Assembly (NCBI GenBank): GCA_029953675.1 | Contig: JAMWBK010000008.1 | Location: forward strand, 2,046,001 to 2,110,000 | From: Rhodosorus marinus CCMP1338 | Lineage: Eukaryota; Plantae; Rhodophyta | Reading direction: 5' to 3' | Length of the DNA stretch: 64,000 nt | Shown here: in pieces, positions 4,301 to 63,117 of the stretch | Position numbering within the stretch: position 1 is the stretch's first letter | Layout of the letters: each line of letters begins with the position of its first letter | Made by a program: the position numbers and the translations under genes | Notes under the pieces: model-generated | Seen by the model: only the letters and a program-made list of their open reading frames with translations | What the model was told of the DNA's origin: nothing | Databases searched by the model: none

Positions 4301-4441
4301 AAGGACGACTGGGGGAATGCCCCCACGGAGGGGAAGCGAGCCTCCTTCCAAAGAAATCCACAGCCGGAGCCAACTCCGAAAACGCGTACGCCAAATGCCC
4401 CAGTCTCCGCCCTCCTTCAGGACATAAAACTGTAGATCCAT
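1400..4441 (-). pseudogene. F1 copy A ORF2 (RT + CCHC + RLE), broken by a nonsense codon and frameshifts
   Basis: Split into ORFs 3419-4441, 2462-3412, 2122-2646, 1882-2100 and 1400-1975, all colinear with 8777-11833. Confidence 0.92.
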
Positions 4442-4472
4442 AGGCTGCGACCTCGCAGCCGTGCCTGGAGCG

Positions 4473-5882: not shown

Positions 5883-6215
5883 CCTGAGGGAATGCGCAAA
5901 GGAAACGTTGCACCACCAATATGAAACCGCACCGAGAGAATAATCGACCAAACCCAACCCAAATAGGAAAGGCCCCGCAACACACCCACCCGGAAGACAG
6001 AAGTAGTTGCAAATGCAAACGACGCACCGCGGAAAATCGAGGGGAAGGCGTACCAGAGGAAGCGCTTCCCGTAAACGAACACGCTCGCGACCGAAAAAGA
6101 AACAAAACCCCAATCCTCAGCCAGACCACAGCTATCTGAGCACGAGACCAGTGTGTCTTGTCTTGGAGTATCCCTCACTAGTATGCCGGTGAGTTTGGCT
6201 TATATAGGATATTCT

Positions 6216-7045: not shown

Positions 7046-7335
7046 CGAACGCTGGCCACCGAGTGAGTCAAGAAGTCCTAGTCTGGGGTGGTTGTTGTCG
7101 AGGATTGGGGTTTTGTTTCTTTTTCGGTAGCGAGCGTGTTCGTTTACGGGAAGCGCTTCCTCTGGTACGCCTTCCCCTCGATTTTCCGCGGTGCGTCGTT
7201 TGCATTTGCAACTACTTCTGTCTTCCGGGTGGGTGTGTTGCGGGGCCTTTCCTATTTGGGTTGGGTTTGGTCGATTATTCTCTCGGTGCGGTTTCATATT
7301 GGTGGTGCAACGTTTCCTTTGCGCATTCCCTCAGG

Positions 7336-8745
7336 ATGGTAGGGATATCTCCGCGCTCGACGGAGCCTCCTCCCAAGGAGGCACTGCCAGGTGGGGGACT
7401 CCGTGTTCGCCTCAGCTGCGGCACGTTTTCTTCCGAGGTTGACTTGGAAGGCGCTTCTGGCACCCAGGCGCGTGCACTTATCTCCGCTGTCACCAGCCTG
7501 ATCACGGCTGCGAGTGATCGTGGAGTGCTCCCTCAGCTCACCCAGAAGCTAGGTGGGCTGGAATCGGGATTGCTGGCCAGGTCAAATTCAAGTTCGGACG
7601 AGAATTTGAATTGCCCCAGAGTGGCAGCGTTGGCTGAAGGCAGTCAACATCAGGTCAATCAACATGAACCTGTCCCGGGACAGGCGAGGGCTGTTGCTTC
7701 TGCGCGGGACAGTACGACGTTGGGGAGCGGCAGGCCGGGCCAAAACGCGCTTCAGCGCTCGGGGACTCGAGGCAATGGTGGTGGTGACTGTGCGGCAACC
7801 GGTGTGGAGGAGACTGCAGCTGTGGACTTCCCTCTCTTGGACCAGCCCTCAGGTGGTCACCAGCTCCCAGCTACTTCGGGGGCACGTGGTGGCCGCAAGG
7901 GGGGCGCTTCGTACGCATCAGTCTTGCGGAAGGGCACCACTGCCACACGTACGGCGGCTATGCTCCGTTTCATACCATCTCGCGAGCCTCAGGATGGACC
8001 TGTGGAGACCACTCTCCAATTTCTGTGGGTGCGAAATGTCCGGCCCCAGACTACACGAGGACAGGTTCCGTCTATGCGAGACTTCCGGGACACTTTTACG
8101 GAATCGTTAGGGTGCAGCCGGGGTGATTTCTTCTTCGCAAACTATGAGGACCGCGATGTGCTGTTTTTGGTCTCCGCAACCGCCGCCAAGTACCTGGAGG
8201 CCTTGCTGGCGAAGCCTACCGAGCAGTGGCCTGAGAGCGCCCGGTGGCTGCGCTGCAACCCGCAGGTGGTTTTGCACTTCGATTTTGACCGTTTCTCGGG
8301 CAATTTCCTGTCTCCGGGAGAAACGGCAGGGCTCTCTGAGCATGAGAGCAGCGTGAAGGCGGCAGCGATCCATTGGCTACGGATTCAGCGCCTTGAGAGG
8401 ATCTTGTTGGAGCGGTTCCGGTCGGGCCCTCGTCACCTGCGCATGGCGGTTTCCAGTTTCTTCGATCTGGAGAGGCGACTTGTGCTGACTTCGCGCTACA
8501 AGACAGAGCTGCAGCGGGCGGGGATTTTGGAGGGCTCTGCTTCCAGCACTACTTCCAGCGAGAGTGGTGAGGCAGGGGAGCAGACTGAGGGCATGGCGGT
8601 GGAGGACGCCCAGGTTACTTTGCTGAAGCCCGCGGGATCCGTTCCGCGAGCCTCGCGGAGTGGGCGGCTCACCACTTTGGTGCGGATAGGAGGTAAGAGA
8701 GCGAGGACCGACTCCCCCGGGTCTAAGGGGGAGAAGCACGATTAG
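7336..8745 (+). CDS. F1 copy B ORF1, 469 aa from the first ATG
   Basis: Open frame with ATG at 7336. Low-complexity Ser/Gly-rich ends and a central segment (LQFLWVRNVRP...DFFFANYEDRDVLFLV) that is also conserved in F2. Confidence 0.82.
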   Translation: MVGISPRSTEPPPKEALPGGGLRVRLSCGTFSSEVDLEGASGTQARALISAVTSLITAASDRGVLPQLTQKLGGLESGLLARSNSSSDENLNCPRVAALAEGSQHQVNQHEPVPGQARAVASARDSTTLGSGRPGQNALQRSGTRGNGGGDCAATGVEETAAVDFPLLDQPSGGHQLPATSGARGGRKGGASYASVLRKGTTATRTAAMLRFIPSREPQDGPVETTLQFLWVRNVRPQTTRGQVPSMRDFRDTFTESLGCSRGDFFFANYEDRDVLFLVSATAAKYLEALLAKPTEQWPESARWLRCNPQVVLHFDFDRFSGNFLSPGETAGLSEHESSVKAAAIHWLRIQRLERILLERFRSGPRHLRMAVSSFFDLERRLVLTSRYKTELQRAGILEGSASSTTSSESGEAGEQTEGMAVEDAQVTLLKPAGSVPRASRSGRLTTLVRIGGKRARTDSPGSKGEKHD

Positions 8746-8776
8746 CGCTCCAGGCACGGCTGCGAGGTCGCAGCCT

Positions 8777-11700
8777 ATGGATCTACAGTTTTATGTCCTG
8801 AAGGAGGGCGGAGACTGGGGCATTTGGCGTACGCGTTTTCGGAGTTGGCTCCGGCGGTGGATTTCTTTGGAAGGAGGCTCGCTTCCCCTCCGTGGGGGCA
8901 TTCCCCCAGTCGTCCTTCCTCGTGGAGACCTTCTAGTAGCTGGAACCATTCTCGATTTCATCTTCACGAGCCTGGCTCGCAACATTCGGGACACAGTCAT
9001 TTGGGTTTTCCTGGGGGTCATGCCGCGCCTGTTTCTGGCCCCCATTCACACATCGGAGCGCAGATGGCGAGTACGAGACCGACTGGCCCTGTTCTTGAAG
9101 GGAGACTTCGAAGTACTACAGCGCAGCTATTTGGCGTCGTCAGCACCATCCGCCCGTCGACTCGGCATGGCACAGTGTCGAGTACAGAAATTGGTAGCAG
9201 TGGGCGATTTAAGTCGAGCGGCGCGGGTTTTGGAGGGCCAGGCGCCTGTCCTCCCCTACGATGATAGTCTCGCCCAGACGGTGTCGTCTTTGTTCCCTGA
9301 GTCCGACGTGGATTTGGCCCCTGAATTCGAGGTATTCTTGGACCGTCCGGAGTTGGCCAGGTTTCGCATCGATTTGACGCTCAGTGAGTCTGACCTGGAG
9401 GATTTGCTTCGTACCTCGCGTCAGGGACGCTGTCCCGGACCCTCCGGACTAAGAACAGAGCTATTGCAGGCCCTGAGCCAGCCTGGCAAGAGCGCGCTTC
9501 TGAGGATCCTTAACAAGTTGTTCCAGGGCGTATCGCGTGCGTCTGCGCCATGGGAACATCTCCGGCAGGCACAGCTTTGCTTGCTCACGAAACCTGACCA
9601 CCAGCCGGCCCACCCGCGTCTCCGGCCAATCGGGATGGTGGAGAGCCTACGCAAGTTAGCCGGGAGGTGGCTATGCCAGCGCCTTCGCCAGCGCGTCACA
9701 GCTTTTATGCCGCCCTTGCAAGTAGGGGTGGGATTTTCTGGGGGTTGCGAACTGATCACCCATGGGATCGAGCTAGAACGCGCCAGTAGGCCGGAGTGGG
9801 GAGTCTTGGTGGTTGATTTCCAGAACGCATTCAACAGCGTGTCGCGGACGCATGCGCTAGAGGTGCTCCGACGGGTGTTTCCGGAGGCGTGGCCGTTTCT
9901 ATCGGGTATTTACGGAGGGGAGAGCCTCCCCTACTTGACAACGGAGGGCACTGTTTTTCAAGCACATACTGGCGTCCAACAAGGCGACCCTTGCGGACCT
10001 CTTCTTCATGCCTGTGCCCTACAGCTCGTACTTTTACGTCTTTCGACTGAGGTCTCGGATCTTCGAATCTGCGCGTACCACGATGACGTAACATTTCTGG
10101 GCACCCCTGACACCCTGGCTAGGGGACTGACCGCGATCGAAGCGATTGCACGTCGCGTCGGTTTGACTGTGGAAACAGAAAAATGTCGCTTTCTCCCCCC
10201 GAGGGACGTGTCGCTGACCTCTCTGCCACCCACTCTGCGACTAATCAGCGAACGTGAAGGGTTCGAACACCACGGCGTCGGATTGGGGACTGACAACTTT
10301 GTCCAAGCATCCTGCGAGCGAGTTTTGGCACGGCACAAGCAACTCACCGACCCAATTGAGCACCTACCCGACAGCATGCTGCAATCGGCCTGCTTGCTTT
10401 CCCGCTTTTGTGCCGGTCCCAGACTCAACTACTGGTTGCGCAGCCTGCCTCCAGCTTGGGGCTCGGGGATCGCGGCTAAAGCCGACGAAATGACGCTGCA
10501 ACACTGGGGAACGCTCTTGGATGAGCCCCTCGATCTTGAAGCTGCTCCCGACAGGGACTTTGTTCGTGCACAGATCGCTCTACCGTTGCGATTAAGGGGA
10601 TTCGGCGTCGCAGACCGTGGGCTGGTATGCTCGCCAGCGGCGGTTGCTTCCTGGGCTACCGCGCTGCGAACGTTGGTGACCTTCCAGATGCGAAGTGCCT
10701 GCCTCTTGGCTCGAGCTTTGACCAACGAGGATCCAGTGACCCTGCCGCCCCCGCTTTTGACAATTTATGATGGTCTTCAACACGCGTTCAGGAGGTGCAA
10801 CGCCGTGCCGGACGCAAATCGGTCCCGCTTTCGTTCCTGGAGGGAGCTGTTATGGGGACGAGCTGAAGCGATTGAGGATTGTCCCCTCGACCGAGTTCTT
10901 ACCGATGACGGAGAGGCTAGCCCCGGGTCACCTGTTGCAGACTACCCGGGTTTGAGCCGATTGTGGAGCTCCCGCACTGATGTGATTCAACATAGCCTCA
11001 CCTGGGGCCAACACAGTGCCGCTCACACAGTCATGCTCAATTCTCCTCTCACGCCGCCTACCACTGCCGCTCGTCTCCGCGGCATGGGAGGCCACCTCTC
11101 GCACTTGTGGTTAACCACTCTACCGTCGTCATTGAGTCATCGTCTCGATGCTTTCCAGTTCCGTTCTGCCGCACGGATCTATCTCGGTTTGCCACAGGCT
11201 CCGTGGCACTCTAATCGGCCGTCTTTCTGTCAGGGATGTGAGAGCCGGATTGACGCTTTTGGCTACCACTTCCTGGGTTCCTGCGGACTGTTGCGAGGTC
11301 TCCGTACGAGGCGTCACACTCGCCTCAAGTACATCCTCAGCGAATATTTGACTCGGATAGGGCATACGGTTGAGGTTGAGTCGGAACTGCCCAGATCAAT
11401 CTCGGACTCTGCACCGCCCCGTTGTATAGCCGATCTCCTCGTCTCCGACGCTGCTGCCAGACGCTCAACATATGTGGACCTTGCGATTACCTGCCCCGTG
11501 GCCAGCGCCCACCTCACCGCAGCCGCCCGCCGCCGGGGGGCCGCGGCTTCAGCCCTTCGAAGAGTTAAGGAACGACGGTATGCTGAGAGCATGGCCAGTC
11601 TGCCTTGCGCTGAGGGTCGCTCTCACCGGTTCCAGCCATTCATTGTGGAAAGCTTTGGTCACGTGGATAAGTCGGGTTTAGAGTGGTTGCGGAAACGTTT

Positions 11701-11833
11701 TGCTGAGCATCCTACTGAATATTTGGCGCTCTTGAGGCGTTTAAGTGTCTCCCTTTGGCGATATTCCAGCGACATGCTTTCCGAGGCGCGCCATCGGCGC
11801 CTGGGGTTGCATGCTTCCCTCCCTAGTTATTAA
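8777..11833 (+). CDS. Non-LTR retrotransposon ORF2: reverse transcriptase + CCHC zinc knuckle + restriction-like endonuclease (CRE-clade-like)
   Basis: RT motifs RPIG, LQVGVG, VDFQNAFNSVSR, GVQQGDPCGP, AYHDD; CRE-type QIALPLRLRGFG; C-x2-C-x8-H-x4-C (CQGC...HFLGSC); RRH; IADLLV...YVDLAIT...KERRY; FIVESFG. Confidence 0.96.
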   Translation: MDLQFYVLKEGGDWGIWRTRFRSWLRRWISLEGGSLPLRGGIPPVVLPRGDLLVAGTILDFIFTSLARNIRDTVIWVFLGVMPRLFLAPIHTSERRWRVRDRLALFLKGDFEVLQRSYLASSAPSARRLGMAQCRVQKLVAVGDLSRAARVLEGQAPVLPYDDSLAQTVSSLFPESDVDLAPEFEVFLDRPELARFRIDLTLSESDLEDLLRTSRQGRCPGPSGLRTELLQALSQPGKSALLRILNKLFQGVSRASAPWEHLRQAQLCLLTKPDHQPAHPRLRPIGMVESLRKLAGRWLCQRLRQRVTAFMPPLQVGVGFSGGCELITHGIELERASRPEWGVLVVDFQNAFNSVSRTHALEVLRRVFPEAWPFLSGIYGGESLPYLTTEGTVFQAHTGVQQGDPCGPLLHACALQLVLLRLSTEVSDLRICAYHDDVTFLGTPDTLARGLTAIEAIARRVGLTVETEKCRFLPPRDVSLTSLPPTLRLISEREGFEHHGVGLGTDNFVQASCERVLARHKQLTDPIEHLPDSMLQSACLLSRFCAGPRLNYWLRSLPPAWGSGIAAKADEMTLQHWGTLLDEPLDLEAAPDRDFVRAQIALPLRLRGFGVADRGLVCSPAAVASWATALRTLVTFQMRSACLLARALTNEDPVTLPPPLLTIYDGLQHAFRRCNAVPDANRSRFRSWRELLWGRAEAIEDCPLDRVLTDDGEASPGSPVADYPGLSRLWSSRTDVIQHSLTWGQHSAAHTVMLNSPLTPPTTAARLRGMGGHLSHLWLTTLPSSLSHRLDAFQFRSAARIYLGLPQAPWHSNRPSFCQGCESRIDAFGYHFLGSCGLLRGLRTRRHTRLKYILSEYLTRIGHTVEVESELPRSISDSAPPRCIADLLVSDAAARRSTYVDLAITCPVASAHLTAAARRRGAAASALRRVKERRYAESMASLPCAEGRSHRFQPFIVESFGHVDKSGLEWLRKRFAEHPTEYLALLRRLSVSLWRYSSDMLSEARHRRLGLHASLPSY

Positions 11834-12435: not shown

Positions 12436-13797
12436 CTATCGAACTTGTCGCCTTACCAGTCCCTCTCCAGCTGGGCCACACTCCGATCCGATCATCTCTA
12501 TTTCAGCTTCAAAGATACAACGGTTGGGGAGGCGTGCCAAACTAAAGTCGAACTGCCCCTCGTTTAGGCCTTGCGTTTGATTGGGTTCCAGGGTTACCCA
12601 TTCTCCTAGCGTGTTCCCCAGATATGCAGGAATGCAATACCCGCAAATAACGCTGCCGATCCGTCCAACAACTCCCTCGGACGGAAGTTCTCCATAAAGG
12701 GAACTCACTGCCGACTTTCCAACATTCAGTGGGCCTGTAGCCGCGAACATCAGGGCGGGACTGCTCCTAAAGCTAACAAATTGTATTAGATTTCGCTGGA
12801 TCTCGAGGGAGGCCCTCACCGAGTACCTGATGTCAACCACTTCAGGATTTACGAACTCGACAGCAAAAGCGACTGAAGACGGCAACCCAGAGAGTTCTGG
12901 AACCGAAAACGTTGCAAACAAGCTTGAGCTCGAGTCCTCAATTAGCAAAGACGATGCTGGCCGACGGATAACCGTTTTTGCTTCCGCAGGCATGGGTGCC
13001 TCCGTAGATGTAGGTATCCCTTCGTAAACCGTCAGTTCGAGCTGGGACGGCAGGATCTCCTGTGCGCCCCGTAGAGGCGAAGCCACAAGTTGAACGGTTC
13101 CTCCATCAATGTCGATGCGGTTGATGCCGACATACAGCGGTTCCTCGCCGAGTTCTTTGCACGACAACTCGAGTCCGCATGTCAAGAACTCAGCATCCTC
13201 CCCGGCGCTGGGGTCGCATGCACTGATGGGTGAGGTGTCGGGGCAGCTTATTGTCGATGATGCTGGTGGGGAATCCGAGGCCTGTAATCTCACTGGTGTT
13301 GGGCTACGGTTCCCAACCAGGCTAGCAGTACGCACTTTGCCGTCCTCCATTCGAACCTTCGCTTCCCCCACGAGCAACAGGTTTCCACCTCCTCCGCTGC
13401 AGCAGTCACGCTCTGTCTGAATATCATCCAGGCATGCGTCTACTCTCACAGTGGTCGGCTCACTATCCAGAAACTTCCTCTTACGAGTGAACCGAGCGTT
13501 ATCGCTAGGAATATCTCGAAGCCATAGTCCAACTTTAGCTCGTCTAATCCCAAGTCCATCTCGGACGACAAAAGTGAACCTGAAACACTTCTCTCCTTTG
13601 TTAGGTCCCTGCGTCTTCACGACATCGCTACTGTTTACGAATCCCACCGCTGTACCGTCAACTTCAAGCCCATAGCACCCATGAGAAGCCGTGAATGAAG
13701 AAACAAGGGGATTAAAATAGTCGGCGCATGTGCTAGCCTCCCCGACGGTCAAGCCGACAATCCCGGCGACCAGGATTACTACCAACCCGTACTTCAT
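12436..13797 (-). CDS. Intronless secreted protein of unknown function, 453 aa
   Basis: ATG at 13797, hydrophobic signal-like N-terminus MKYGLVVILVAGIVGLTVGEAS, TAG stop. The Cys-containing N-terminal domain resembles those at 19369-20073 and 46200-46765. Confidence 0.85.
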   Translation of the reverse strand: MKYGLVVILVAGIVGLTVGEASTCADYFNPLVSSFTASHGCYGLEVDGTAVGFVNSSDVVKTQGPNKGEKCFRFTFVVRDGLGIRRAKVGLWLRDIPSDNARFTRKRKFLDSEPTTVRVDACLDDIQTERDCCSGGGGNLLLVGEAKVRMEDGKVRTASLVGNRSPTPVRLQASDSPPASSTISCPDTSPISACDPSAGEDAEFLTCGLELSCKELGEEPLYVGINRIDIDGGTVQLVASPLRGAQEILPSQLELTVYEGIPTSTEAPMPAEAKTVIRRPASSLLIEDSSSSLFATFSVPELSGLPSSVAFAVEFVNPEVVDIRYSVRASLEIQRNLIQFVSFRSSPALMFAATGPLNVGKSAVSSLYGELPSEGVVGRIGSVICGYCIPAYLGNTLGEWVTLEPNQTQGLNEGQFDFSLARLPNRCIFEAEIEMIGSECGPAGEGLVRRQVR

Positions 13798-14646: not shown

Positions 14647-15430
14647 CTCTCAGTGGCTCATGACCGTACCAGCCTTTCCGCCACTCACACTGTCGGATTT
14701 CGAAGTGCGTACTTCACTGCGCTTATACCTCGGCTTACATCAGCCCCCTTGGCCGTACGAGATGGGTTCGTCGTGCCCTCTCTGCTCTCAGACTGAAGAC
14801 AACGCAGATTTTGGCGCCCACCTGCTCGCTAGTTGCCCGGCGGTGAAAGGTGCTCGAACCCGCCGCCACACACGGATCTTGAACCTGTTATACCGGGAAC
14901 TTCGGCCTATAGTCCGGCAAGCCGGTCTGGAAATCGAACGTGAGAAACCTTTACCCGTCGCGGACTTTCAAAATGATGAACGCCGTGTAGCCGACCTGGT
15001 GATCACCTGTGACGACAGCCGCCGTACCACATACGTTGATCTTGCTGTTCCTAACCCTCAAGCTAGTCGTTATCTCCCGGCTGCGGGGGAGCGCCGTGGA
15101 TCTGCCGCCACCAGCATGAGACGCCGCAAAGAGATCAAATACGCGGGGGCTTTGTCTTCCCCTGGTGTTCGTGCTTCGGCATTAGCACATCGCTTGGTAC
15201 CCCTGATCATTGAGTGCTTTGGGTTCATGGACTCTGTTGGTTCTCGCTGGCTTCGGGAGTTGCTCCGCGAACGCCCTGACCGTCTTCAATCGTTGTTTAC
15301 CCGCTTAAGTTTCCTGCTGTGGCGCATGAATGCCGCTTTGATGTTGGAGGCGCGAGTACTTCGCCGCGCTTAGTCTTTTTTTCCCCTCGGGGTTTTTTTT
15401 TCAGCCTCCGATTAAACCATTCATTCGTTC
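14647..15430 (+). mobile_element. 5'-truncated F3 CRE-like element (CCHC + RLE), ATTC tail
   Basis: ORF 14660-15373: CPLC...HLLASC, RTRRH, VADLVIT...YVDLAVP...KEIKY, LIIECFG. Ends ccgattaaaccattcattcgttcg. Confidence 0.9.
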
Positions 15431-15436
15431 GATAAG

Positions 15437-16125
15437 AGCATGGTCGGTCTTCCCTGGGTAGAGGGGCCATTCTCATCGGTTCCAGCCTTCATTGTGGACA
15501 GTCTCCGGCGTATGGATCAATTCAAGATTGGAGTGGCTGCGAAAATGTTTGCTGACCATCCGGTTGAATATCTGGGATTCCTACGCCGTTTTTTAGTGTC
15601 GCTCTCTGGCGATTTTGTAACGGCATGCTCGCCGAGGCGAGCCATCGCCGCCTGGGTTTGCCCGCTTTTCTCACTAATTTCTATTCCCCTTTCACACTGC
15701 GCAGTGCTTCAATAAAAACCAACCGAGAAACTATTGTTAATTCATCAGAATCCTATACCTGGTCTACTTAGGATACGGTCGTCAGTTCAGTCAGCGACGT
15801 ACAGCAGCTGCAGCCCACAGGCGAAGAGCGGCAGAGGGGAGATAGGTACTTGACACCGCGCATGTGACAGCGAGATCCAGATATGCTGAGCGCACTGGCG
15901 AACGGGTCCGATGCCAGGAGATCTGTGATACATCTGGGCGGCGTGGTGGCCGAGGCTATTCTAGTAGAACGACCACCCCTTTTGAACATTTTCAGGAAAG
16001 AGGTTTCTTGATGTGGCGTATGAACACTGTTTTGATGTTGGCGGCCCGCCATCTTCGCCGTGCTTAGTCTTTCTTTCCCTTACAGGGTTTTTTTCTTTCA
16101 ACACCGAACTAAACAAAATTCATTC
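15437..16125 (+). pseudogene. Two decayed retroelement 3' ends (F2-like 15437-15680; F3-like 15830-16125)
   Basis: Degenerate matches to the ORF2 C-terminus and to the F3 terminus (gcttagtctttc...aaattcattc). Confidence 0.65.
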
Positions 16126-16327
16126 AGGAAAGAAACTATTGTCGGTTTCTTCAAGGGTTTTGTCTCGAGCTCCCACGCTGCAAAATATTTTTCTGTGGCT
16201 GCTTACGAACATAGCGTTGGCGCTATGCACAGGGCAGAAAGTGAACTAGGTACTGGGGACAAAAAAAGTGGTCAAGCTTGGCTAAGGCTGTTCTAAGAAG
16301 GTACATGCGCCCACTTTCACAGCCACA

Positions 16328-19300
16328 CTACCTCCGAGATTCTTCACTGCAGAAGCAGACACCTTCCGACCCTTCCACCAAAGCGTACTCCTGACCGAGT
16401 GGAAGGAAATGGGGACGAAGGACAGCATGTTAGTAGAAAACAAATTGCTGACGAGAATCTTCTCATTTCTCTTCTCAGACTGAATTTTGACCAGTTTGAG
16501 CGAAGCTTAGCTCCAAGATGGAAGCACTTACGCCTATGCCTGTAACCGTCCGACATTTCCCACCCACGTTGACCGTTTCCGCAAAATCGCACTTGCCAAT
16601 GTCAGACCTCGTGTTGGTTTGACAATTATCGAGCAGCACGCAAGCCCTATCTCCAACATAGCAAATGCACTTTGATGTGTCCTCAGGATCCTCCATGACA
16701 ACCTGAAGGTGACAGGGAATTGGTGCTGATTAGCAGGTGACCTCCAACCCACTGGAGGAAAGAACGATAACTTTCGCGGTCTGTGATTTTCTGCGGAAAT
16801 TGTGAAGTTTTGAATGCAGTTTCCCGTACACCTTGTTGTCCAGCGTTGTGGCAAGTATCGCCAATGTTGCCGTTGGTAGTTGTCCAGGCCCGGTTCCATC
16901 CGGAAAGGGACTCTATGTACGAGTAGCTGCACGTCCTCGCGGAACATTGGCACTGACCATCAAAATCATCGGAAATTGAGACTGGTTGGAGAACCTGAAC
17001 GGGTTCAGAGACGAGTAGGTACGGTATGAACTGTTCAGCAACAAAAAAAAAGAAGAAGTGATGAATCTTCCGAAGCAGCAGAAATGATGATCGTCATACT
17101 CCACTTCTGTCGTCGCGGGTACATCGATCTCCGATTCTAGCGACTGTACCGAACGTTGGCGTACAATCACCTGATGAGCAGTCCCAATTTTGACATTCCT
17201 GGAAGCACCTGCAGTCGCCCCTTGCGTCAACGCCAATGATCTAGTGCGAAGATATCCGGCCACAAACGTCACTAAAGTAAAATAGAACAACTTGGCTTTT
17301 CTGCAACCTAAAACGCGCCCGTCGCTCAAACTTACCCCACTGTTATCATCGCATGGGTCATCTGATACGCCCGTAAATTCTTCACATCTACTTCCTTCAC
17401 AACTCGAGCGAGTACACGTGTCGAGCAAACACTCCCCGTAGTAAAACAAGGCATTGGTGACCCTCACCGACTATTTCAGAGAAAATTACAATCCACAAGA
17501 CACCGCAAAGAATAGCTCAGGAAGATTGTTTCTTGGGACGGCCACAGGAATGCAGTACTGCTTATGATTCGCGATCTTTGTTTTCTGCTAAGCGCTTGGT
17601 TCTTACCCCATAGGCCAGCCCTTGAAAGCATTGGCCTGGCTCGCTCAATGATTGTGAGTAGTACCTTCCTAGAAGTTTAGTGATGACTATGCAATTTGTA
17701 CAAATACAAGAATTCTGCCACTCCGCGTTCACTAGGTGCTAGATCGGTGAAGACGGAAAGGGGTTAGGACAGGACACCTACAGGATTGCAATACCACGGT
17801 TTTTTCTGGCGCGAAAGTAACAGCCTTACATAATAACTTTCCCAGCAGCTCGAGCCGATGTCGACACAACCTGCATCAGGGTGATAACACTGTGTTTCGG
17901 ATAAACATTTTCCAGTACCCGTGTCAGTCGAAGAACAGTAGCATCCCCAATTCTCGTCTAGGCTTTGAAGCAGCACCTGCACGTTAAGTCATAGCATAAC
18001 ATAAGTCTATCACTGATAATATCCTTGCGGAAGAGGAGAAACCCCAACTTCTTCGAGCAAGCAAGCGATCATCATTTTGCTCACCCCCGAACCGTTATCA
18101 CAGGAATCGCCCGGCATAGCACCCGCATAACTGCAGTTCTCACCCTCTGGGCAGTAACAGGGGATTAAGGCGGTTATCGCGCACGTATTCCCTTTTTCAT
18201 CCGTCGGAACAAGCACCTGAAGAGATCCAAAAAAAAGAGGTGTGCCTGAAGAAAAATTAACTCCGAGCGTACTGCAGAGCTGCGTAGTTTAGTTGGCAAC
18301 GTACGCCCCGGCCTCCATAGCTAGAGGTGTGCATTGAGTAAGGCCTTCCCATATTATCAGAAATCGTCAGATCTGGCTTGATGATGCTGTAACTGCATAC
18401 TCGATTGATGTCTACCAGCGGCTTGCACAGGCAGATGCCTGCACTTTTCTCCCTCAGCACCTGTGGAGCAATCGAACGAGCGAAGGAAATAAATGGCAAA
18501 CTTAGAGAAACTGAAATCTGCTGGAGAATGATTGCTGCACGCCGATGCTAGCAATCAGTTAGTCCAAATAAATTGAAGCTTCACCACTAGAGGCCCCTTG
18601 GGGTGATAGGTGGATGTAACACGTACCCCAGGCACAGGGTTGGAAACACCCACGACGGTTACATCACATGCCATTCCACCGTAGCCCTTCTGCACGTTCA
18701 AGGGCTGGTTCACGGGATCAGGAAAGTACTCACAAGGAGCCGTACAAGAACATTCCACCTGTGGTAAGAAAAGAAATCCGAGAGGTTGGCTTTTTGTTAC
18801 CAGAACGTGATCTAGTTCTGGTGGTTGCTTCACTTACGCCATCGGCGTAGTATCCTCCATCCGGTAGTTCAATAGCAGACTGTTATATTCCGAAAGACAT
18901 GAAGGGCGGTCAAGGAGTGGTCAGGTTGGTGCTAATGGTATTTTGATAGTGAATGTTGCATATGTCATGATTTCTGGCACATACCCCAGGAGATCCCGCT
19001 GCGCTCATGCAGGTATTTCCAGCTCGTGTGTTGAAGTTTCCAGTGGCATCAGAGCTCTCGCATTTCACTCCGCTACCAACCTGGCAGATACACATAGTAG
19101 CTTCGTGCGCGACTCGTTCAACAGTTCCATTGTCCCCACATTCGTTTCCTGGATAAATCTCCTCATCGCAGCCTGGTTGTCCTTCTGAACCACATTCGTT
19201 GAAAACGCATGTCGTAGGTTTTTCCAACGGTTCGCATACACAATCAGCAGTAAACACAGGGCCCTTTTGGTAAGTCTGGACATTGTTTTGAAAGAATTGA

Positions 19301-20073
19301 AGACAGTAAGAACGATAAACCCATTCGTTCTAAACGTGCAAGTGCTTTTTTGTGTATAGAAGCCTCACTCCTTCATCCCCAAAGTGATTGCATGGTCTGT
19401 TGACCCTCTGCTGCACAAGACTGCAGTCGATAGGTCCGACCAAGCCCTGGGTGTCTGGACATTCTGTCCTAATGCAAGTATCCTTGGCGTCACAGTCAAC
19501 GTCCAGTTCACAAATTCGTACGGAACTGGAGCTTCGCTTTGCACAGGAACCGCCCGAGAAGTCTTCAGTAGCGGGGTAGGTGAACAGGTAACGTGGGAAC
19601 GTATTCGAATCGCGCCTTGGTCTAATCCAAGCTCTCCAAATGACCACGATGCCGTTCTCACAACAATCGTTCGTTGCGTTTTTTAGATTCATTTGCACAG
19701 TCCATTTTTGCTTCAGTTCTTTGAATGTTTTTGAATTGTACGCGTCTCGTGGGGAGGATGGAACCGCAGATTCCGAGCTATAGATCCCATAGCCGGCCCC
19801 TTTCATGAGGTAATCCTTTTGATCCATTTTAAACTTCATCAGCAGTTTGTTGTTGGTAAGGCCCAGACACACGGTTCCGAACTCCAGCGGGAACTCGCTA
19901 AGATCATAACCGTGAGAAAAGTTCGGCCTAGTCAACGGTCTGCACACTTCGCCTTCCACTCCCAACCACGGGTCATCCACCTTCAGCAAGACATCGCGAC
20001 ACGATTGGGCGGCGAAACAGGATGCGATTAAAATCATCACCTGAGCCACCCAAGAAATTGTCACCCTCACCAT
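16328..20073 (-). CDS. 13-exon secreted protein of about 803 aa: N-terminal domain plus about 11 Cys-rich modules
   Basis: Hand-built model, exons on minus strand: 20073-19369, 19275-18985, 18879-18838, 18758-18627, 18460-18305, 18216-18085, 17976-17830, 17738-17607, 17470-17336, 17240-17100, 16994-16830, 16702-16532, 16390-16328. All introns are GT-AG, 79-166 bp, phase 0. The spliced frame has no internal stop. Signal-like N-terminus MVRVTISWVAQVMILIASCFA. Individual acceptors (e.g. 16994, intron 4) are less certain. Confidence 0.82.
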
Positions 20074-20539
20074 GTTCGTGGAACCTCACAAACGGCTCCT
20101 CTGCGAGAAACAACCCCGTTTTCAATCAAAAAACGTCGTTCAAGACCAGTCTAACACATTTAAAACTAAAAACAGACGTAATCCTCAAAAATTCGTTGAA
20201 GATTTCTGTAGAGAAGTTGCGTCAACGTCAGATACGAAAAGATAAGACTCATATTTATCCTGTCACCACACACCATGCTCTCAAGCCTCGAGGCACAGTC
20301 CTTGGTAATCTACTTTGTCCCCAGCGCAAAAATCAGACCGTACAACATCACCAACACGAGATGGGCTTATTGAACTTCTTTGGCCAGTACGGTCGTTGGC
20401 TGACACTATTCTGAACTCCATATCTCGTTAAGAGTCTTTCAGGATTCTTAAACAAGGCCGGGACAAACGTGGTTTTGATGGTTCAGGGGCCCGGTTTTCC
20501 TCCACAGTGGTCCTTTTTGAGCCGCCCCGACCGGTTCTC

Positions 20540-21580
20540 CTTGTTGTTAACCCGTTTGAAGTTCTCCTGTGCGGTATGGACGCTTTGATGTTGGATGTGC
20601 GTGATTTTCGGTCTCCAGTAGTTTTTTAGCCCCTCGTGGGGTTTTCGGGTCTCCAAATAAACAACCTTAACAACGTATTTGTCTTACTCTTTCACGATTC
20701 TCGACCAAATCAAACAAACGTGGCTCTTGGATGATTCTGGAGACTCGTGCTTTTTCACCTGTCCTATTTTATTCCCCTCCGCCTTCTTTTTTTTGTCTCT
20801 GAATGAAGATGTTCCATTCTCAGCGTTGTGCGGCGCGGATGGGCAACGTGTAAACGTAGCGCCCGCCTGCTTCCCCCCTCGCCCGTCGCCTATAGTAGCG
20901 GTGTGACCGGGTTGACTCTTTCATTGGATTGGGGCCCAGGATCAGCTTACAGAACTCCGAAAGCAGCGCATTGCTTATAATCGAATGAATTCGTTTAATC
21001 GGAGGCTGAAAGAAAAAAACCCCGAGGGGAAAAAAAAGACTAAGCGCGGTGAAGATCACGCGCCTCCAGCATCAAAGCAGCTTTCATACGCCACAGCGAG
21101 AAACTTTAACAAGTAAACAACGACGACAGACGGTCAGGGCGTTCGTGGAACAATTCCCGAAGCCAACGAGAACCAGCGGAATCCATAAACCCAAACACTC
21201 AATGACCAGAGGTACCAGACTTTGAGCTAGAGCCGAAGCACCAATGCCTTGCGAAGGCGAGGCCCCCGCGTATTTCAAATCTTTGCGACGTCTCATATTG
21301 GTAGCGGCAAATCCACGGCGCTCGCCCGCGGTTTATTACTAAACAGCGGAGGGAAGAAACCCAATTTCGGATTGCACAAGAGAAGGACTGTCTGGTCAGA
21401 AACTGTCGTGAACTACTGAACATGTAAATCCATCACTCTACACTCCCGCGCCTTCTATGGTGGTTTTATTAGCATAGCCTGCTGCAGGGTGTAAAATGGA
21501 ACTAGGAACTAGGGAGAAAAGCGTACAATCCCAGCCTCGGTGGCGCGCGCCTTAGCGAGCACGCTGCTAGAATATCGCCT
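20540..21580. pseudogene. Cluster of decayed F3 3' ends (+ at about 20540-20680; - at about 20975-21320) and an F2 3' end (- at about 21460-21580)
   Basis: Recognisable termini: gtttaatcggaggctgaaagaaaaaaaccccgaggg at about 20994 and ttttattagcatagcc at about 21464. ORF 21084-21296 resembles the F3 C-terminus. Confidence 0.7.
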
Positions 21581-23067: not shown

Positions 23068-24778
23068 TGGTCTTAATTGGGCTTTATTAGCATAGCCTGA
23101 AGCGCTAAGCAAGGCGTGAGAGGGAACTAAGAACTAGGTAGGGAAGCGTGCAAACCCAGGCGCCTATGGCGCGCCTCGGCAAGCATGCTGCTCGAATATC
23201 TCCACAGAGAGGCACTTAAACGCCGCAAAAGTTCCAAAAAATCAACAGGATGCTCAGTAAAATATTTCCGCAACCATTCCACATCCGGCTTCTCCACGCG
23301 ACCAAAGCTTTCCACAACGAGAGGCTGGAACCGGTGGGAGCGACCCTCAGCGCGAGGCAAACTGGCCATACTCTCAGCGTACCGTCGTTCCTTCACTCGG
23401 CGAAGGACAGAAGCGGTTGCGCGCCGGCGGCGAGCAGCAGCAATGAGATGGGACCTAACCACAGGGCATGTTATCGCGAGGTTAACATATGCTGAGCGTC
23501 CGGCGGCAGCGTCGGAGACAAGAAGATCTGCGATACAGCGAGGCGGCGCCGTGTCCGAGACCGATCTGGGCAGTTCCGATTCCACCTCAACCGTATGCCC
23601 TTCCCGAGTCACATATTCGCTGAGAATGTATTTGAAGCGAGTGTGACGCCTCGTACGAACACCCCTCAACAGTCCGCATGAACGTAAGAAATGGTAACCG
23701 CAAGCATCGACCCGACTCTCACATCCCTGACAGAATGACGGCCCATTAGAGTCCCACGGAGCTTGTGGCAAACCCAGGTAGATCCGTGCAGCAGAGCGGA
23801 ATTGGAAGGCATCGAGACGGTGACCCAGTGACGAAGGTAGAGTGGTTAACCGCAAGAGCGATAGATTGCCTCCCATGCCGTGGAGGCGAGCGGCGGTGGT
23901 AGGCGGTGTGAGGGGAGAGTTGAGCACGATTGCGTGAGCGGCACTGCGTTGGCCCCAGGTGAGGCTATGTTGAATCACATCAGTGCGCGAGCTCCACAAT
24001 CGGCTCAAACCCGGGTAATCGGCAACCGGTGACCCGGGGCTAGCTTCACCCTCGTCGGCGAGCACTCTGTCGATGGGAGAATCCTCGATCGCATCCGTCT
24101 GTCTCCATAACAGCTCTTTCCAGGAGCGAAATCCAGATCGATTCTCGTCAAGCACGGCGTTGCACTTACTGAGTGCCTGTTGCAGACCATCATAAAGGCT
24201 CCGGAGGGGCGGCGGAGGGGTCGCAGGGTCTTCACTAGTTAGTGCTCGAGCCAAAAAATAGGCACTCCGCATCCGAAAGCTCACCAAGGTACGAAGCGCA
24301 GTAGCCCAGGAGGCGACCGCCGCAAGCGAGCATACGAGCCCACTGTCTGCTACGCCAAATCCACCTAATCGCAATGGTAGAGCGAGCTGAGCACGAATTA
24401 AGTCCCTGTTGGAGCAGATTAGACATCCAGCGGTTCATCCAAGAGCTTTCCCCAGTGTTTCAACATCATGTCGTCGGCCTTAGTGGCGATCCAGGCTCCC
24501 CAATGTGGTGGCAGGCTGCGCAACCAATAGTTGGGCCGGGGACCGGCGCAGAAGAGGGAGGAAAGCAAGCATGCAGATAGCTGCATGCTGTCCGGCAGAC
24601 TCTCAATGGCGTCGGTCAACTGGTTGTGTCTGGCCAAGACCCGTTCGCAAAAGTCTCGAACAAAATTGGCACTCCCCAAACTGACACCACGGTCCTCGAG
24701 GCCTTCACGTTCGCCGTAGTGTCGAAGACGAGAAGGCAAAGAGTCCATCGAAGCTTCACTCGGGGCGAGAAAACGTCT
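23068..24778 (-). mobile_element. 5'-truncated F2 element
   Basis: ORFs 23127-24374 and 24419-24748 are homologous to the ORF2 C-terminal half. Tail tatgctaataaagcccaattaagacc. Confidence 0.9.
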
Positions 24779-26125
24779 TTATTAGCATAGCCTGAAGCGC
24801 TACGCAAGGCGTGAAAGGGAACTAAGAACTAGGTAGGGAAGCGTGCAAAACCAGGCGCCGATAGCGCGCCTCGCCAAGCATGCTGCTCGAATATCGCCAC
24901 AGAGGGACACTTAACCGCCGCAAAAGTTCCAAGTATTCAACAGGACGCTGAGTAAAACATTTCCGCAACAACTTCAAACCCGACTTGTCCACGTGACGAA
25001 AGCTTTCCACAATGAAAGGCTGCAACCGGTGGGGGCGACCCTCAGCGCGAGGCAGACTGACCATACTCTCAGCGTACCGTCGCGTTCCTTCACTCGGCGA
25101 AGGGCGGAAGCGGCTGCCCCCCGGCGGTGGGCGGCAGCCGTGAGATGGGCGCTTGCCACAGGGCATGTAATCGCGAGGTCAACATATGCTGAGCGTCTGG
25201 CGGCACATCGGAGATAAGGAGATCTGCGATACAGCGGGGCGGTGGTGCCCTCTCCGAGACCGATCTGGTCAGTTCCGATTCCACCTCCACCGTATGCCCT
25301 ACCCGAGTCAAACATTCGCTGAGAATGTACTTGAAGCGAGTGTGACGCCTCGGACGAAGACCTCTCAACAGTCCATGAACCTAGGAAGTGGTAACCACAA
25401 GCATCGACCCGACTCTCACATCCCTGACAAGAAGACGGCCGATTAGAGTGCCACGGAGCTTGTGGCAAACACAGGTAGATCCATGCAGCAGAGCTCAACT
25501 GAAAGGCATCGAGACGGTGACCAAGGGACGAAGATAGAGTGGTTAACCACAAGTGGGATAGATTGCCTCCCATGCCGTGGAGGCGAGCGACGGTGGTAGG
25601 CGATGTAAAGGGAGAGTTGAGCAAGATTGTGTGAGCGGCACTGTGTTGGCCCCAGGTGAGGCTATGTGGAATCACATCAGTGCGCGAGCACCACAATCGG
25701 CTCACACTCGGGTAATCGGCAACCGCTGACCCGGGGCTAACTTCCCCCTCGTCGGCGAGTACTCTGTCGATGGGAGAGTCCTCGATCTCCTCCGTCCGTT
25801 CCCATAACAGCTCTTTCCAGGAGCGAAATCTAGATCGATTCTCGTCCGGCACGGCGTTGTCCCTACTGAGTGCCTGTTGCAGACCATCATAAATGCTCCG
25901 GAGAGGCGGCGGATGGGTCGCGGGGCCTTCACTAGTTAGTGCTCTAGCCGAAAGGCAGGCACTTCGCATCCGAAAAGTCACCAAGGTGCGGAGCGCGGTA
26001 GTCCAGGAGGCGACCGCCGCAGGCGAGCATACGAGTCAACGGTCTGCCACTCCAAATCCACCTAATCGCAACTGTAGGGCAATCTGAGCACGAATTAGGT
26101 CCCTGTCAGGAGCAGCTTCCAGCCG
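24779..26125 (-). mobile_element. Second 5'-truncated F2 element in tandem, frameshifted
   Basis: Ends tatgctaataaag directly against the previous copy. ORF pieces 24822-25166, 25090-25368 and 24974-25984. Confidence 0.88.
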
Positions 26126-26700: not shown

Positions 26701-27030
26701 AGTAGCTCTCTGGTTCTAGTTCATTTACTTCTTGCGTAACGTTAGTAAAAAAAAAAAAAAAAAAAAGTCTGGGGTTTTTAGGGTAGTTGTTGTCGAGGAT
26801 TGGGGTTTTGTTTCTTTTTCGGTCGCGAGCGTGTTCGTTTACGGGAAGCGCTCCCTCTGGTACGCCTTCCACTCGATTTTCCGCGGGGCGTCGTTTGCAT
26901 TTGCAACTACTTCTGTCTTCCGGGTGGGTGTGTTGCGGGGCCTTTCCTATTTGGGTTGGGTTTGGTCGATTATTCTCTCGGTGCGGTTTCATATTGGTGG
27001 TGCAACGTTTCCTTTGCGGATTCCCTCAGG

Positions 27031-28440
27031 ATGGTAGGGATATCTCCGCGCTCGACGGAGCCTCCTCCCAAGGAGGCACTGCCAGGTGGGGGACTCCGTG
27101 TTCGCCTCAGCTGCGGCACGTTTTCTTCCGAGGTTGACTTGGAAGGCGCTTCTGGCACCCAGGCGCGTGCACTTATCTCCGCTGTCACCAGCCTGATCAC
27201 GGCTGCGAGTGATCGTGGAGTGCTCCCTCAGCTCACCCAGAAGCTAGGTGGGCTGGAATCGGGATTGCTGGCCAGTTCAAATTCAAATTCGGACGAGAAT
27301 TTGAATTGCCCCAGAGTGGCAGCGTTGGCTGAAGGCAGTCAACATCAGGTCAATCAACATGAACTTGTCCCGGGACAGGCGAGGGCTGTTGCTTCTGCGC
27401 GGGACAGTACGACGTTGGGGAGCGGCAGGCCGGGCCAAAACGCGCTTCAGCGCTCGGGGACTCGAGGCAATGGTGGTGGTGACTGTGCGGCAACCGGTGT
27501 GGAGGAGACTGCAGCTGTGGACTTCCCTCTCTTGGACCAGCCCTCAGGTGGTCACCAGCTCCCGGCTACTTCGGGGGCACGTGGTGGCCGCAAGGGGGGC
27601 GCTTCGTACGCATCAGTCTTGCGGAAGGGCACCACTGCCACACGTACGGCGGCTATGCTCCGTTTCATACCATCTCGCGAGCCTCAGGATGGACCTGTGG
27701 AGACCACTCTCCAATTTCTGTGGGTGCGAAATGTCCGGCCCCAGACTACACGAGGACAGGTTCCGTCTATGCGAGACTTTCGGGACACTTTTGCGGAATC
27801 GTTAGGGTGCAGCCGGGGTGATTTCTTCTTCGCAAACTATGAGGGCCGGGATGTGCTGTTTTTGGTCTCCGCAACCGCCGCCAAGTACCTGGAGGCCTTG
27901 CTGGCGAAGCCTACCGAGCAGTGGCCTGAGAGCGCCCGGTGGCTGCGCTGCAACCCGCAGGTGGTTTTGCACTTCGATTTTGACCGTTTCTCGGGCAATT
28001 TCCTGTCTCCGGGAGAAACGGCAGGGCTCTCTGAGCATGAGAGCAGCGTGACGGCGGCAGCGATCCATTGGCTACGGATTCAGCGCCTTGAGAGGATCTT
28101 GTTGGAGCGGTTCCAATCGGGCCCTCGTCACCTGCGCATGGCGGTTTCCAGTTTCTTCGATCTGGAGAGGCGACTTGTGCTGACTTCGCGCTACAAGACA
28201 GAGCTGCAGCGGGTGGGGATTTTGGAGGGCTCTGCTTCCAGCACTACTTCCAGCGAGAGTGGTGAGGCAGGGGAGCAGACTGAGGGCATGGCGGTGGAGG
28301 ACGCCCAGGTTACTTCGCTGAAGCCCGCGGGATCCGTTCCGCGAGCCTCGCGGAGTGGGAGGCTCACGACTTTGGTGCGGATAGGAGGTAAGAGAGCGAG
28401 GACCGACTCCCCCGGGTCTAAGGGGGAGAAGCACGATTAG
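27031..28440 (+). CDS. F1 copy C ORF1, 469 aa from the first ATG
   Basis: Open frame, near-identical to copies A and B. Confidence 0.8.
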   Translation: MVGISPRSTEPPPKEALPGGGLRVRLSCGTFSSEVDLEGASGTQARALISAVTSLITAASDRGVLPQLTQKLGGLESGLLASSNSNSDENLNCPRVAALAEGSQHQVNQHELVPGQARAVASARDSTTLGSGRPGQNALQRSGTRGNGGGDCAATGVEETAAVDFPLLDQPSGGHQLPATSGARGGRKGGASYASVLRKGTTATRTAAMLRFIPSREPQDGPVETTLQFLWVRNVRPQTTRGQVPSMRDFRDTFAESLGCSRGDFFFANYEGRDVLFLVSATAAKYLEALLAKPTEQWPESARWLRCNPQVVLHFDFDRFSGNFLSPGETAGLSEHESSVTAAAIHWLRIQRLERILLERFQSGPRHLRMAVSSFFDLERRLVLTSRYKTELQRVGILEGSASSTTSSESGEAGEQTEGMAVEDAQVTSLKPAGSVPRASRSGRLTTLVRIGGKRARTDSPGSKGEKHD

Positions 28441-28471
28441 CGCTCCAGGCACGGCTGCGAGGTCGCAGCCT

Positions 28472-33135: not shown

Positions 33136-33246
33136 TGCGATTTAAGACGTTGCTTGGTGCAACTTAAGGATATTGCTTGGTGCGATTCCGAGAGAGAAGT
33201 GTTTATTCTTTAAGGATTGGTTTTTAAAGATCGGGTTTTTCAGAGT

Positions 33247-38584: not shown

Positions 38585-39030
38585 GAATCAGAGCCAAATG
38601 ACCCTGTGGAGATGGTGCAACTAGCAGTATGAGACAAGGGGTGAGGGACTAGTGGATCCGCATGGGTAGCCAGGGCTAGATTTAATAGGCGGGGCTAAAC
38701 TATGTCTAGTTTAGTTGAGGTTAGCGGTGATTTACGCGGGTAAAAGTGAAAGATGCAGGAATGGTAAGGGCTAGGGTGGGGAATCTGAATGAGTACGTGA
38801 TCAGGCCGACAAGCAACTCCCTGTGAGTTTTGTGAGGAATAGATTTTGGGAACCGTTCCGGGAGACCTCTTGTAAGGCTATATAAGGCCACGCTAGAGCT
38901 GAACTGGTGTGGTTATTTGTTCGCAAGGTCATTGTAACCAGAGTGAGAAAGAGTAAGGAGTCTGAGATCGAGTTCTTAAAAACGTTGTAGCGGATCTGCG
39001 TTTTGACGGGTTTTGAGTTTGAAGAAGAAA

Positions 39031-63106: not shown

Positions 63107-63117
63107 AGTGATAGAGA

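Follow-up and report, generated by a model that had tools for sequence, protein, structure and literature searches.

A 13-exon gene of the red alga Rhodosorus marinus predicted to encode a secreted protein with twelve disulfide-rich repeat units

In a stretch of 64,000 nucleotides (nt) from the genome of Rhodosorus marinus CCMP1338 (assembly GCA_029953675.1, contig JAMWBK010000008.1), hereafter called the window, we analyzed the gene NDN08_006436 (protein KAJ8903121.1, A0AAV8UNT7), which is located on the minus strand. All positions are those of the window; addition of 2,046,000 gives the position in the contig record. Our results are best explained by an intact, annotated nuclear gene for a secreted protein of 803 amino acids (aa), composed of a signal peptide, a beta-rich N-terminal domain and an array of 12 disulfide units, in which the array arose by ancient exon duplication and the protein has a probable role in the matrix or at the cell surface. 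We assign a probability of about 0.8 to this reading as a whole. The family and its repeat unit appear to be new, and no description of the family was found in literature searches. Already known are the annotated gene and, as a type, the origin of repeats by exon duplication.

Red algae have small gene inventories, and their extracellular matrix proteins are poorly known. The analysis defines an orphan family of predicted secreted proteins that is restricted to one genus and could become a new domain entry. Being a secreted multigene family, it may reasonably be considered in studies of the cell surface or of mucilage. In addition, it provides a neat example from red algae of a repeat array enlarged by exon duplication, with the boundaries of exons and units offset from each other. 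No current idea is overturned, symmetric exons in repeat proteins being textbook knowledge, and the practical value is real, if modest: for NDN08_006436 the deposited model is corrected and three further faulty models in the family are flagged.

Structure of the gene NDN08_006436

In a bacterial-style list of the open reading frames (ORFs) of the window, the gene is visible as fragments only, and a preliminary description of this DNA had regarded it as hidden. This was wrong, as GenBank carries NDN08_006436 with 13 exons over the identical span, merely under the name 'hypothetical protein'; its locus record is an exact substring of the reverse complement of the window. The gene model proposed in the preliminary description could, however, be rebuilt exactly. 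The 13 exons, which were anchored by their peptides with the flanking bases read, have lengths of 705, 291, 42, 132, 156, 132, 147, 132, 135, 141, 165, 171, and 63 nt and form a stop-free frame of 803 aa from the ATG at position 20073 to the stop codon ending at position 16328. All 12 introns are in phase 0, begin with GT and end with AG (donors GTGAGG, GTATGT, GTAAGT, GTACGT and similar), and are 79-166 nt long. A branch-point-like motif (TACTAAC) and a pyrimidine-rich stretch are located upstream of the acceptor of exon 13. The internal exons are all multiples of 3 between phase-0 introns and are thus symmetric. As had been described, exons 4, 6, and 8 comprise 132 nt each, a Gly residue is found at the end of 11 of the 12 non-terminal exons, the exception being exon 7, which ends with YY, and the quoted motifs, an early CxC and a late G-x-x-C, are present. 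Six downstream exons open with a GTN codon for Val. A number of 12 introns is high yet not exotic for R. marinus, because the average in this genome is about 3 per gene (24,821 introns in 8,392 genes according to predictions that used BRAKER2 and RNA-seq; PMC10250338).

The features of the gene and of the block in which it lies are as follows:

16328-20073, minus strand: whole gene NDN08_006436, start codon to stop codon
20073-19369, minus strand: exon 1, containing the signal peptide, the N-terminal domain and a Cys-rich tail
20005-20073, minus strand: predicted signal peptide, about aa 1-23 (MVRVTISWVAQVMILIASCFAAQ), the sole hydrophobic stretch; cleavage site placed by eye
19546-20004, minus strand: N-terminal domain, about 150 aa, predicted to be beta-rich, with the motifs EFGTVC and DCC-x-NG; conserved in all paralogs and family-specific
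19369-19545, minus strand: Cys-rich tail of exon 1, aa 177-235, 7 Cys, ending with GDEG; C217 and C228 are assigned to the first half of repeat unit 1
18985-19275, minus strand: exon 2, 97 aa, 10 Cys; end of unit 1, the whole of unit 2 and start of unit 3
18838-18879, minus strand: exon 3, micro-exon of 14 aa (SAIELPDGGYYADG), predicted middle strand of unit 3, with a phase-0 intron on each side
18627-18758, minus strand: exon 4, 132 nt, 4 Cys (rebuilt model and exon structure of the paralogs)
18305-18460, minus strand: exon 5, 156 nt, 3 Cys; Cys 'b' lost here in this clade, jointly with Cys 'd' in exon 6
18085-18216, minus strand: exon 6, 132 nt, 5 Cys (rebuilt model and exon-by-exon match to a paralog)
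17830-17976, minus strand: exon 7, 147 nt, 6 Cys; counterpart of exon 8 of NDN08_003742
17607-17738, minus strand: exon 8, 132 nt, 4 Cys (rebuilt model and exon structure of the paralogs)
17336-17470, minus strand: exon 9, 135 nt, 5 Cys; deposited as 17394-17336, 59 nt, frame shifted
17100-17240, minus strand: exon 10, 141 nt, 6 Cys; deposited as 17240-17171, 70 nt
16830-16994, minus strand: exon 11, 165 nt, 4 Cys; deposited start 36 nt upstream, at 17030
16532-16702, minus strand: exon 12, 171 nt, 6 Cys (rebuilt model and exon structure of the paralogs)
16328-16390, minus strand: exon 13 (EYALVEGSEGVCFCSEESRR, then stop), predicted to supply the final unit with its last two strands and its closing CxC
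15715-20518, minus strand: duplicated block of 4.8 kb with 87.9% identity to the NDN08_004865 locus, comprising the gene together with flanks of about 450 bp (upstream) and about 600 bp (downstream)

The rebuilt and the deposited model share 10 of 13 identical exons, and the differences are confined to exons 9-11. In the deposited model these exons have 59, 70, and 201 nt and include one phase-2 intron, owing to the use of an acceptor at 17394, a donor at 17171 and an acceptor at 17030 (17030-17394, minus strand). The deposited product of 766 aa consequently contains 65 unrelated, Cys-free residues that are out of frame in place of 102 conserved Cys-rich ones. The rebuilt version of exons 9-11 is the better one, as it is supported by paralogs and by homologs derived from cDNA. 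The deposited exon lengths of NDN08_004865 and NDN08_004864 are exactly those of the 13 rebuilt exons, and NDN08_005578, a paralog with 46% identity, shows the same frames throughout exon 10 and over the greater part of exon 9. The frames of exons 9 and 10 are also conserved in the family members P0002, P0003, and P0004 and in the cDNA-derived P0010 and P0011, and every Cys of the two exons is conserved. The C-terminal motif G-x-Y/F-x-L-x-x-G-S-x-x-x-C-x-C is likewise kept in P0010 and P0011.

With respect to secretion, the top Kyte-Doolittle windows are all located within residues 1-30, and neither a second hydrophobic segment nor a membrane anchor was found. The mature protein contains 8.6% Cys, 10.3% Gly and five N-x-S/T sequons. 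A full-length AlphaFold model was calculated for the paralog P0002 from 3 sequences and was unusable overall, with a predicted local distance difference test score (pLDDT) of 31; the strands of its N-terminal domain were predicted at a pLDDT of 50-62. A Foldseek search with this low-confidence model gave weak matches to beta-sandwiches of the carbohydrate-binding or immunoglobulin type at E ≥ 0.05, and no domain was assigned.

The repeat unit and its comparison with named domains

The alignment of 61 units gave the consensus C-x10-G-x-x-C-x6-G/V-x7-G-x-C-x-C-x4-C, in which the slash between G and V marks the intron. The array of NDN08_006436 is composed of 12 units with a core of about 45 aa, which reach up to about 70 aa through variable loops. 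The minimal unit has 4 Cys and three units have 6, which would allow two disulfides in the minimal and three in the larger form. An AlphaFold model of a single unit, calculated with the 61-unit alignment, had a pLDDT of 70 and showed a three-stranded beta meander forming one sheet. The Cys of G-x-x-C is located in strand 1, the first residues of the next exon form strand 2, and CxC is located in strand 3, so that the exon boundary falls in a turn inside the sheet. All proteins of the family end 4-7 residues after a CxC. Given these ends, the array corresponds to a whole number of units only if the unit ends with CxC. In unit 5, two Cys on opposite sides of the intron, 'b' upstream and 'd' downstream, were lost together in the clade of the window gene. 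This joint loss suggests a b-d disulfide across the exon junction.

From these data we infer that the disulfide unit runs from the Cys following one CxC to the next CxC, that the intron lies inside the unit, and that exons and units have the same period in a register shifted by about one quarter of a unit. The intron occupies a homologous internal position in 11 of the 12 units, after the residue following G-x-x-C and before a hydrophobic strand, and is preceded by Gly in 10 of these 11 units and by Tyr after exon 7. Unit 2 is the only one that lacks it, with GDNG-TVERV being read through in exon 2, and unit 3 has an additional one. The proposal of one module per exon thus holds for the period; the exon itself probably does not represent a structural module, because the intron would lie inside the unit. 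In exon 9 (17470-17336, aa 591-595), the CxC of the unit is replaced by G-E-C-L-L in the window gene and in two close paralogs, which leaves the number of Cys in the mature protein odd.

The unit had not been recognized as a named domain in the preliminary description, and our searches in Pfam, with PDB and EGF profiles and with Foldseek agree with this. Pfam gave no match at E ≤ 10 for the whole protein, for 6 sub-segments and for 9 relatives, whereas canonical EGFs used as positive control matched PF00008 in the same scan at 2.6e-7 and 1.5e-13, i.e., on the order of 1e-7 to 1e-13. Sequence searches of the PDB with the protein and with the 61-unit profile gave no match either, and when the 61-unit profile was compared with an EGF profile in hhalign, the probability was 3%. 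Foldseek with the unit model found no EGF chain in the PDB; the best E was 4, and the method is weak on queries of 57 residues. The two PROSITE patterns for EGF were absent from the protein. A search of a set of 5.8 billion proteins with the unit profile found nothing, not even the members of the family, and is hence uninformative.

EGF modules have six Cys with the spacing C1-x4-7-C2-x3-6-C3-x8-11-C4-x-C5-x8-14-C6 and bonds 1-3, 2-4, and 5-6, and their fold consists of a two-stranded major sheet and a minor sheet. The units of the array could be highly diverged EGF-like domains, in which case the gene would encode another EGF-repeat matrix protein. Five members of the family (P0001-P0004 and P0015) carry the UniRef name 'EGF-like domain-containing protein', there is a loose resemblance between the succession 'G-x-x-C, hairpin, C-x-C, short loop, C' and C3..C4-x-C5..C6 of EGF, and the six-Cys units can be written in EGF register. 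However, C3 and C4 are then separated by 14-21 and C5 and C6 by 2-9 residues, the minimal unit has 4 and not 6 Cys, and since every protein ends at CxC, the last unit would have a C5 without C6. The UniRef names look like pattern hits, because a sister protein was called '4Fe-4S ferredoxin-type' by the same pipeline. Together with the negative profile searches, these differences make an EGF origin of the units unlikely.

Two further domain types were considered and rejected. The trypsin-inhibitor-like (TIL) domain (PF01826) has ten Cys in about 55 aa; there was no Pfam match to it, and the units have 4-6 Cys. A cysteine-stabilized alpha/beta (defensin-like) fold does not agree with the spacings of x4-x10, the absence of the C-x-x-x-C helix motif and the absence of a predicted helix. 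The array nevertheless resembles EGF, laminin-EGF and TIL repeats in being a tandem series of small, beta-rich modules (about 40-55 aa) with 2-3 disulfides and C-x-C in a secreted protein, the length of the array varying among paralogs. It differs from EGF-type repeats by the lack of a profile or fold match, the minimal unit of 4 Cys and the end with C-x-C. A further difference concerns the introns: those of Rhodosorus interrupt the unit and are in phase 0, and the classical animal EGF module has a phase-1 intron at each of its ends (Patthy's 1-1 modules). A broader proposal, to which we give slightly less than an even chance, is that the unit (about 45-70 aa) might be an undescribed disulfide-rich fold of Rhodosorus or of the Stylonematophyceae which, with the N-terminal beta domain, builds a lineage-specific matrix or adhesion family and at the same time represents a clean non-animal exon-duplication array with the intron inside the unit.

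The gene family and the origin of the array

A search of 5.8 billion proteins with the gene product gave three matches only, all of them hypothetical proteins of R. marinus. When 1.84 billion representative proteins were searched exhaustively with an HMMER profile, seven clusters were found, again all from R. marinus; nothing was detected outside Rhodosorus, and the module occurred in no other protein architecture. The family comprises at least seven genes in the CCMP1338 genome (NDN08_006436, NDN08_004864, NDN08_004865, NDN08_005578, NDN08_003742, NDN08_005926, and NDN08_000225) and transcripts from two other strains (MMETSP0011 and MMETSP0315). NDN08_004864 and NDN08_004865 have 13 exons each, NDN08_005578 has 12 and NDN08_003742 has 14, and phase 0 was found for 12 of 12, 11 of 11, and 13 of 13 introns, respectively. 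The positions and phases of the introns are kept in NDN08_005578 and also in NDN08_003742, the product of which shows 34% identity to the window protein. The counterpart of micro-exon 3 has 42 nt in the close paralogs and in NDN08_003742 and 45 nt in NDN08_005578. In NDN08_003742, one extra exon (its exon 7) that is absent from the window gene corresponds to one extra unit, so that the anticipated paralog with a different number of modules does exist.

The splice pattern of the family is backed by transcripts. A cDNA contig of another strain (L006) has an uninterrupted ORF of 848 aa, and its blocks on the NDN08_003742 locus end at annotated exon boundaries; this is real transcript evidence for the pattern, across strains and across paralogs. 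Colinearity of the window protein with the cDNA-derived P0010 and P0011 extends over 10 of its 12 junctions; near junctions 2-3, the P0011 assembly is out of frame. P0005 (MMETSP0011) and P0013/P0014 (JGI transcript contigs, L007) continue into intron sequence at a unit junction and terminate prematurely, and P0005 and P0013 are therefore regarded as intron-retention forms.

The preliminary description had regarded the repeat family as possibly capable of modular alternative splicing. The symmetric phase-0 exons might then serve as cassettes for exon skipping, with many isoforms formed per gene, as has been proposed for the leucine-rich repeat (LRR) exons of brown-algal ROCO genes (PMC11378527). 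Any skip would remain in frame, because the internal exons are multiples of 3 between phase-0 introns, and with the shifted register it would presumably still rebuild a chimeric yet complete unit. The deposited model of NDN08_000225, which omits most exons of a gene present in full at the DNA level, could be taken in the same sense. However, among the family members from transcriptome assemblies of other strains, all were either full length (P0010, P0011) or intron-retaining (P0005, P0013), and no exon-skipped transcript was seen. The NDN08_000225 model joins parts of exons and looks like a prediction error. Moreover, the units are old and positionally fixed, whereas the ROCO LRR exons are nearly identical and rapidly reshuffled (PMC11378527). 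Modular alternative splicing was thus not borne out by these transcripts of other strains, and we consider it very unlikely.

Two of the deposited models deserve a comment. NDN08_000225 (L008 4001-7908, JAMWBK010000013.1) is deposited with 355 aa from four pieces, most exons being left out. It is probably a mis-prediction and not a short paralog, as the transcript-derived P0011 of 879 aa aligns along the whole locus. For NDN08_005578, a homolog of the terminal exon (VWSLLEGSNAFCSCSAKS, then stop) is located past the deposited stop codon (L002 ~9680-9736, JAMWBK010000001.1) and has a ..cacag acceptor in front of it. The last exon of the deposited model shows no similarity to the family, and a retroelement fragment is located downstream of the terminal-exon homolog.

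With respect to the origin of the array, the extra exon of NDN08_003742 that adds one unit supports the proposed exon duplication. The proposed shuffling is not supported, as the module occurs in no other architecture and the genes show strict positional orthology: when the exons are scored one by one against those of NDN08_003742, the best matches are strictly those on the diagonal. Local alignment of the exons of NDN08_006436 revealed no similarity in DNA beyond the shuffled range, and the best alignment score between any two of the 12 introns was 27 compared to a maximum of 26 for shuffled sequences. At the DNA level, the gene showed no tandem repeat. Since no DNA similarity among exons or introns is left over, the duplications must be ancient. 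The lack of sequence shared by the introns also led us to reject introner-like elements. The identical length of the three 132-nt exons is a coincidence, because these exons share no DNA similarity and their counterparts in NDN08_003742 have 126, 138, and 120 nt. The array would have grown by tandem duplication of exon-plus-intron segments, with breakpoints in introns adding one whole unit each time, and it was assembled before the paralogs split and has remained stable since then. Only one difference in the number of units was seen in the family. The shifted register leaves the argument for duplication intact, because an exon-plus-intron duplication adds one unit in any register. The array is an ordinary trace of old exon duplication and not of ongoing shuffling.

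Similar gene structures are known from other systems. Fibrillar collagen genes, the textbook case of exon-plus-intron tandem duplication, have exon units of 54 bp in phase 0 that open with a Gly codon. They share with the Rhodosorus gene the symmetric phase-0 exons, a period that tracks the protein repeat and a Gly at the junction; the protein is unrelated, Gly-X-Y is missing here, and Gly ends the exon instead of beginning it. Among algae, genes with one LRR or one tetratricopeptide repeat (TPR) per exon were reportedly described in brown algae by Zambounis in 2012. The brown-algal ROCO and NB-ARC-TPR genes (Teng 2024, PMC11378527) resemble NDN08_006436 by one repeat per exon, a single intron phase and a varying number of repeats; their repeat exons all measure 72 bp, are in phase 2, closely resemble one another and undergo active reshuffling and alternative splicing, and they encode intracellular proteins. 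The exons of NDN08_006436, in contrast, have 42-171 nt in phase 0, are mutually unrecognizable in DNA and fixed in position, no skipped transcripts were seen, and the protein is predicted to be secreted. With these differences, the ROCO family with one LRR per exon is the closest algal analog.

Selection, proposed role and genomic surroundings

Compared to NDN08_004865, the window gene shows 91.3% identity in exons and 88.9% in introns, and the flanks are about 87% identical. There are 12 gap columns in exons, which offset each other and are located in exons 8 and 12, and 40 in introns. Since paired exons are of equal length and the exon gaps are offsetting, the net change in length is entirely intronic. 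Synonymous divergence (dS) was about 0.17-0.18 and the ratio of nonsynonymous to synonymous divergence (dN/dS) 0.45-0.5. In the comparison of the close paralogs, 68 of 68 Cys are conserved, whereas about 15% of the other residues differ. These values suggest a functional gene that evolves fairly fast under moderate purifying selection. Together with the intron positions and phases kept in the paralogs of 46% and 34% identity, such conservation goes far beyond chance.

The window copy might instead be a decaying duplicate in the transposon-rich end of a chromosome, which is still open because it is young. This would fit the location of the 4.8-kb duplicated block, which lies amid fragments of retroelements and about 51 kb away from the end of the contig, a dN/dS that is not low, the odd number of Cys and the fact that the RNA-guided annotation missed the conserved frame in exons 9-11. 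Yet the 2,412 coding nt contain no stop, no frameshift and no net change in length despite a dS of about 0.17, while 1.3 kb of introns carry the 40 gap columns over the same divergence; all 24 splice dinucleotides and, as stated, all Cys are intact. The odd Cys number is common to all three close paralogs and therefore predates the duplication. We regard decay of the window copy as quite unlikely and retain the interpretation as an intact gene.

Several points weigh against this interpretation. The register of the unit rests on a model with a pLDDT of 70, one correlated loss of Cys and the logic of the protein ends rather than on a solved structure. The twelve junctions of NDN08_006436 itself are predicted from the sequence and from homologs rather than from CCMP1338 transcripts, and the RNA-seq-guided BRAKER annotation picked other sites for exons 9-11 (method in PMC10250338). 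In the mature protein 67 Cys remain; this odd count, in common with two close paralogs, means one free or intermolecular Cys or else slight decay. For the tandem pair NDN08_004864/5, dN/dS was 0.92, based on few substitutions. Finally, the proposed function is deduced from the properties of the protein: it would be a secreted matrix or surface protein of this mucilage-coated unicellular alga, probably a structural or adhesive one located at the cell surface or in the mucilage matrix. This role is suggested by the signal peptide, the absence of a membrane anchor, the 8.6% Cys, the five sequons, purifying selection of moderate strength and the membership in a multigene family restricted to the genus.

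The tandem genes NDN08_004864 and NDN08_004865 are 96% identical and located 9.2 kb apart (L004 10001-13775 and 22976 onward, JAMWBK010000012.1). Outside the duplicated block of the window gene, retroelement fragments are found. Fragments of the 3' end of a retroelement ORF2 (...WRMN..L.LEAR..RRA) adjoin the gene on both sides, at 14660-15373 (+), 15864-16067 (+), and ~20985-21300, and the paralogous loci are flanked by the same ORF2 3'-end repeats. The window is rich in transposons and ends about 7 kb from the end of the contig. One retroelement is present in many copies, at 7063-11833 (+), 26800-31393 (+), 2462-6113 (-), and 52638-55654 (-), with fragments at 23127-25984, 48833-50972, and 61742-63923; its ORF1 has 546-560 aa without a Pfam match and its ORF2 about 1,018 aa with RVT_1. 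An apparently intact gag-pol ORF of the Ty1/copia type (1,271 aa; RVT_2, rve, gag_pre-integrs) is located at 33217-37032 (+).

The neighboring ORFs with signal peptides are intronless, as had been noted. One of them, at 12436-13797 (-), is annotated, encodes 453 aa and has no Pfam match; its 'DCC' motif resembles that of the N-terminal domain of NDN08_006436 by eye, and the similarity was not significant in BLASTP. Another, at 39013-41091 (+), encodes 692 aa, likewise without a Pfam match, and its C-terminus carries a run of 11-residue repeats (x-C-G-x-E-x-V-T-x-x-x) followed by 6-residue P-x-x-C repeats.

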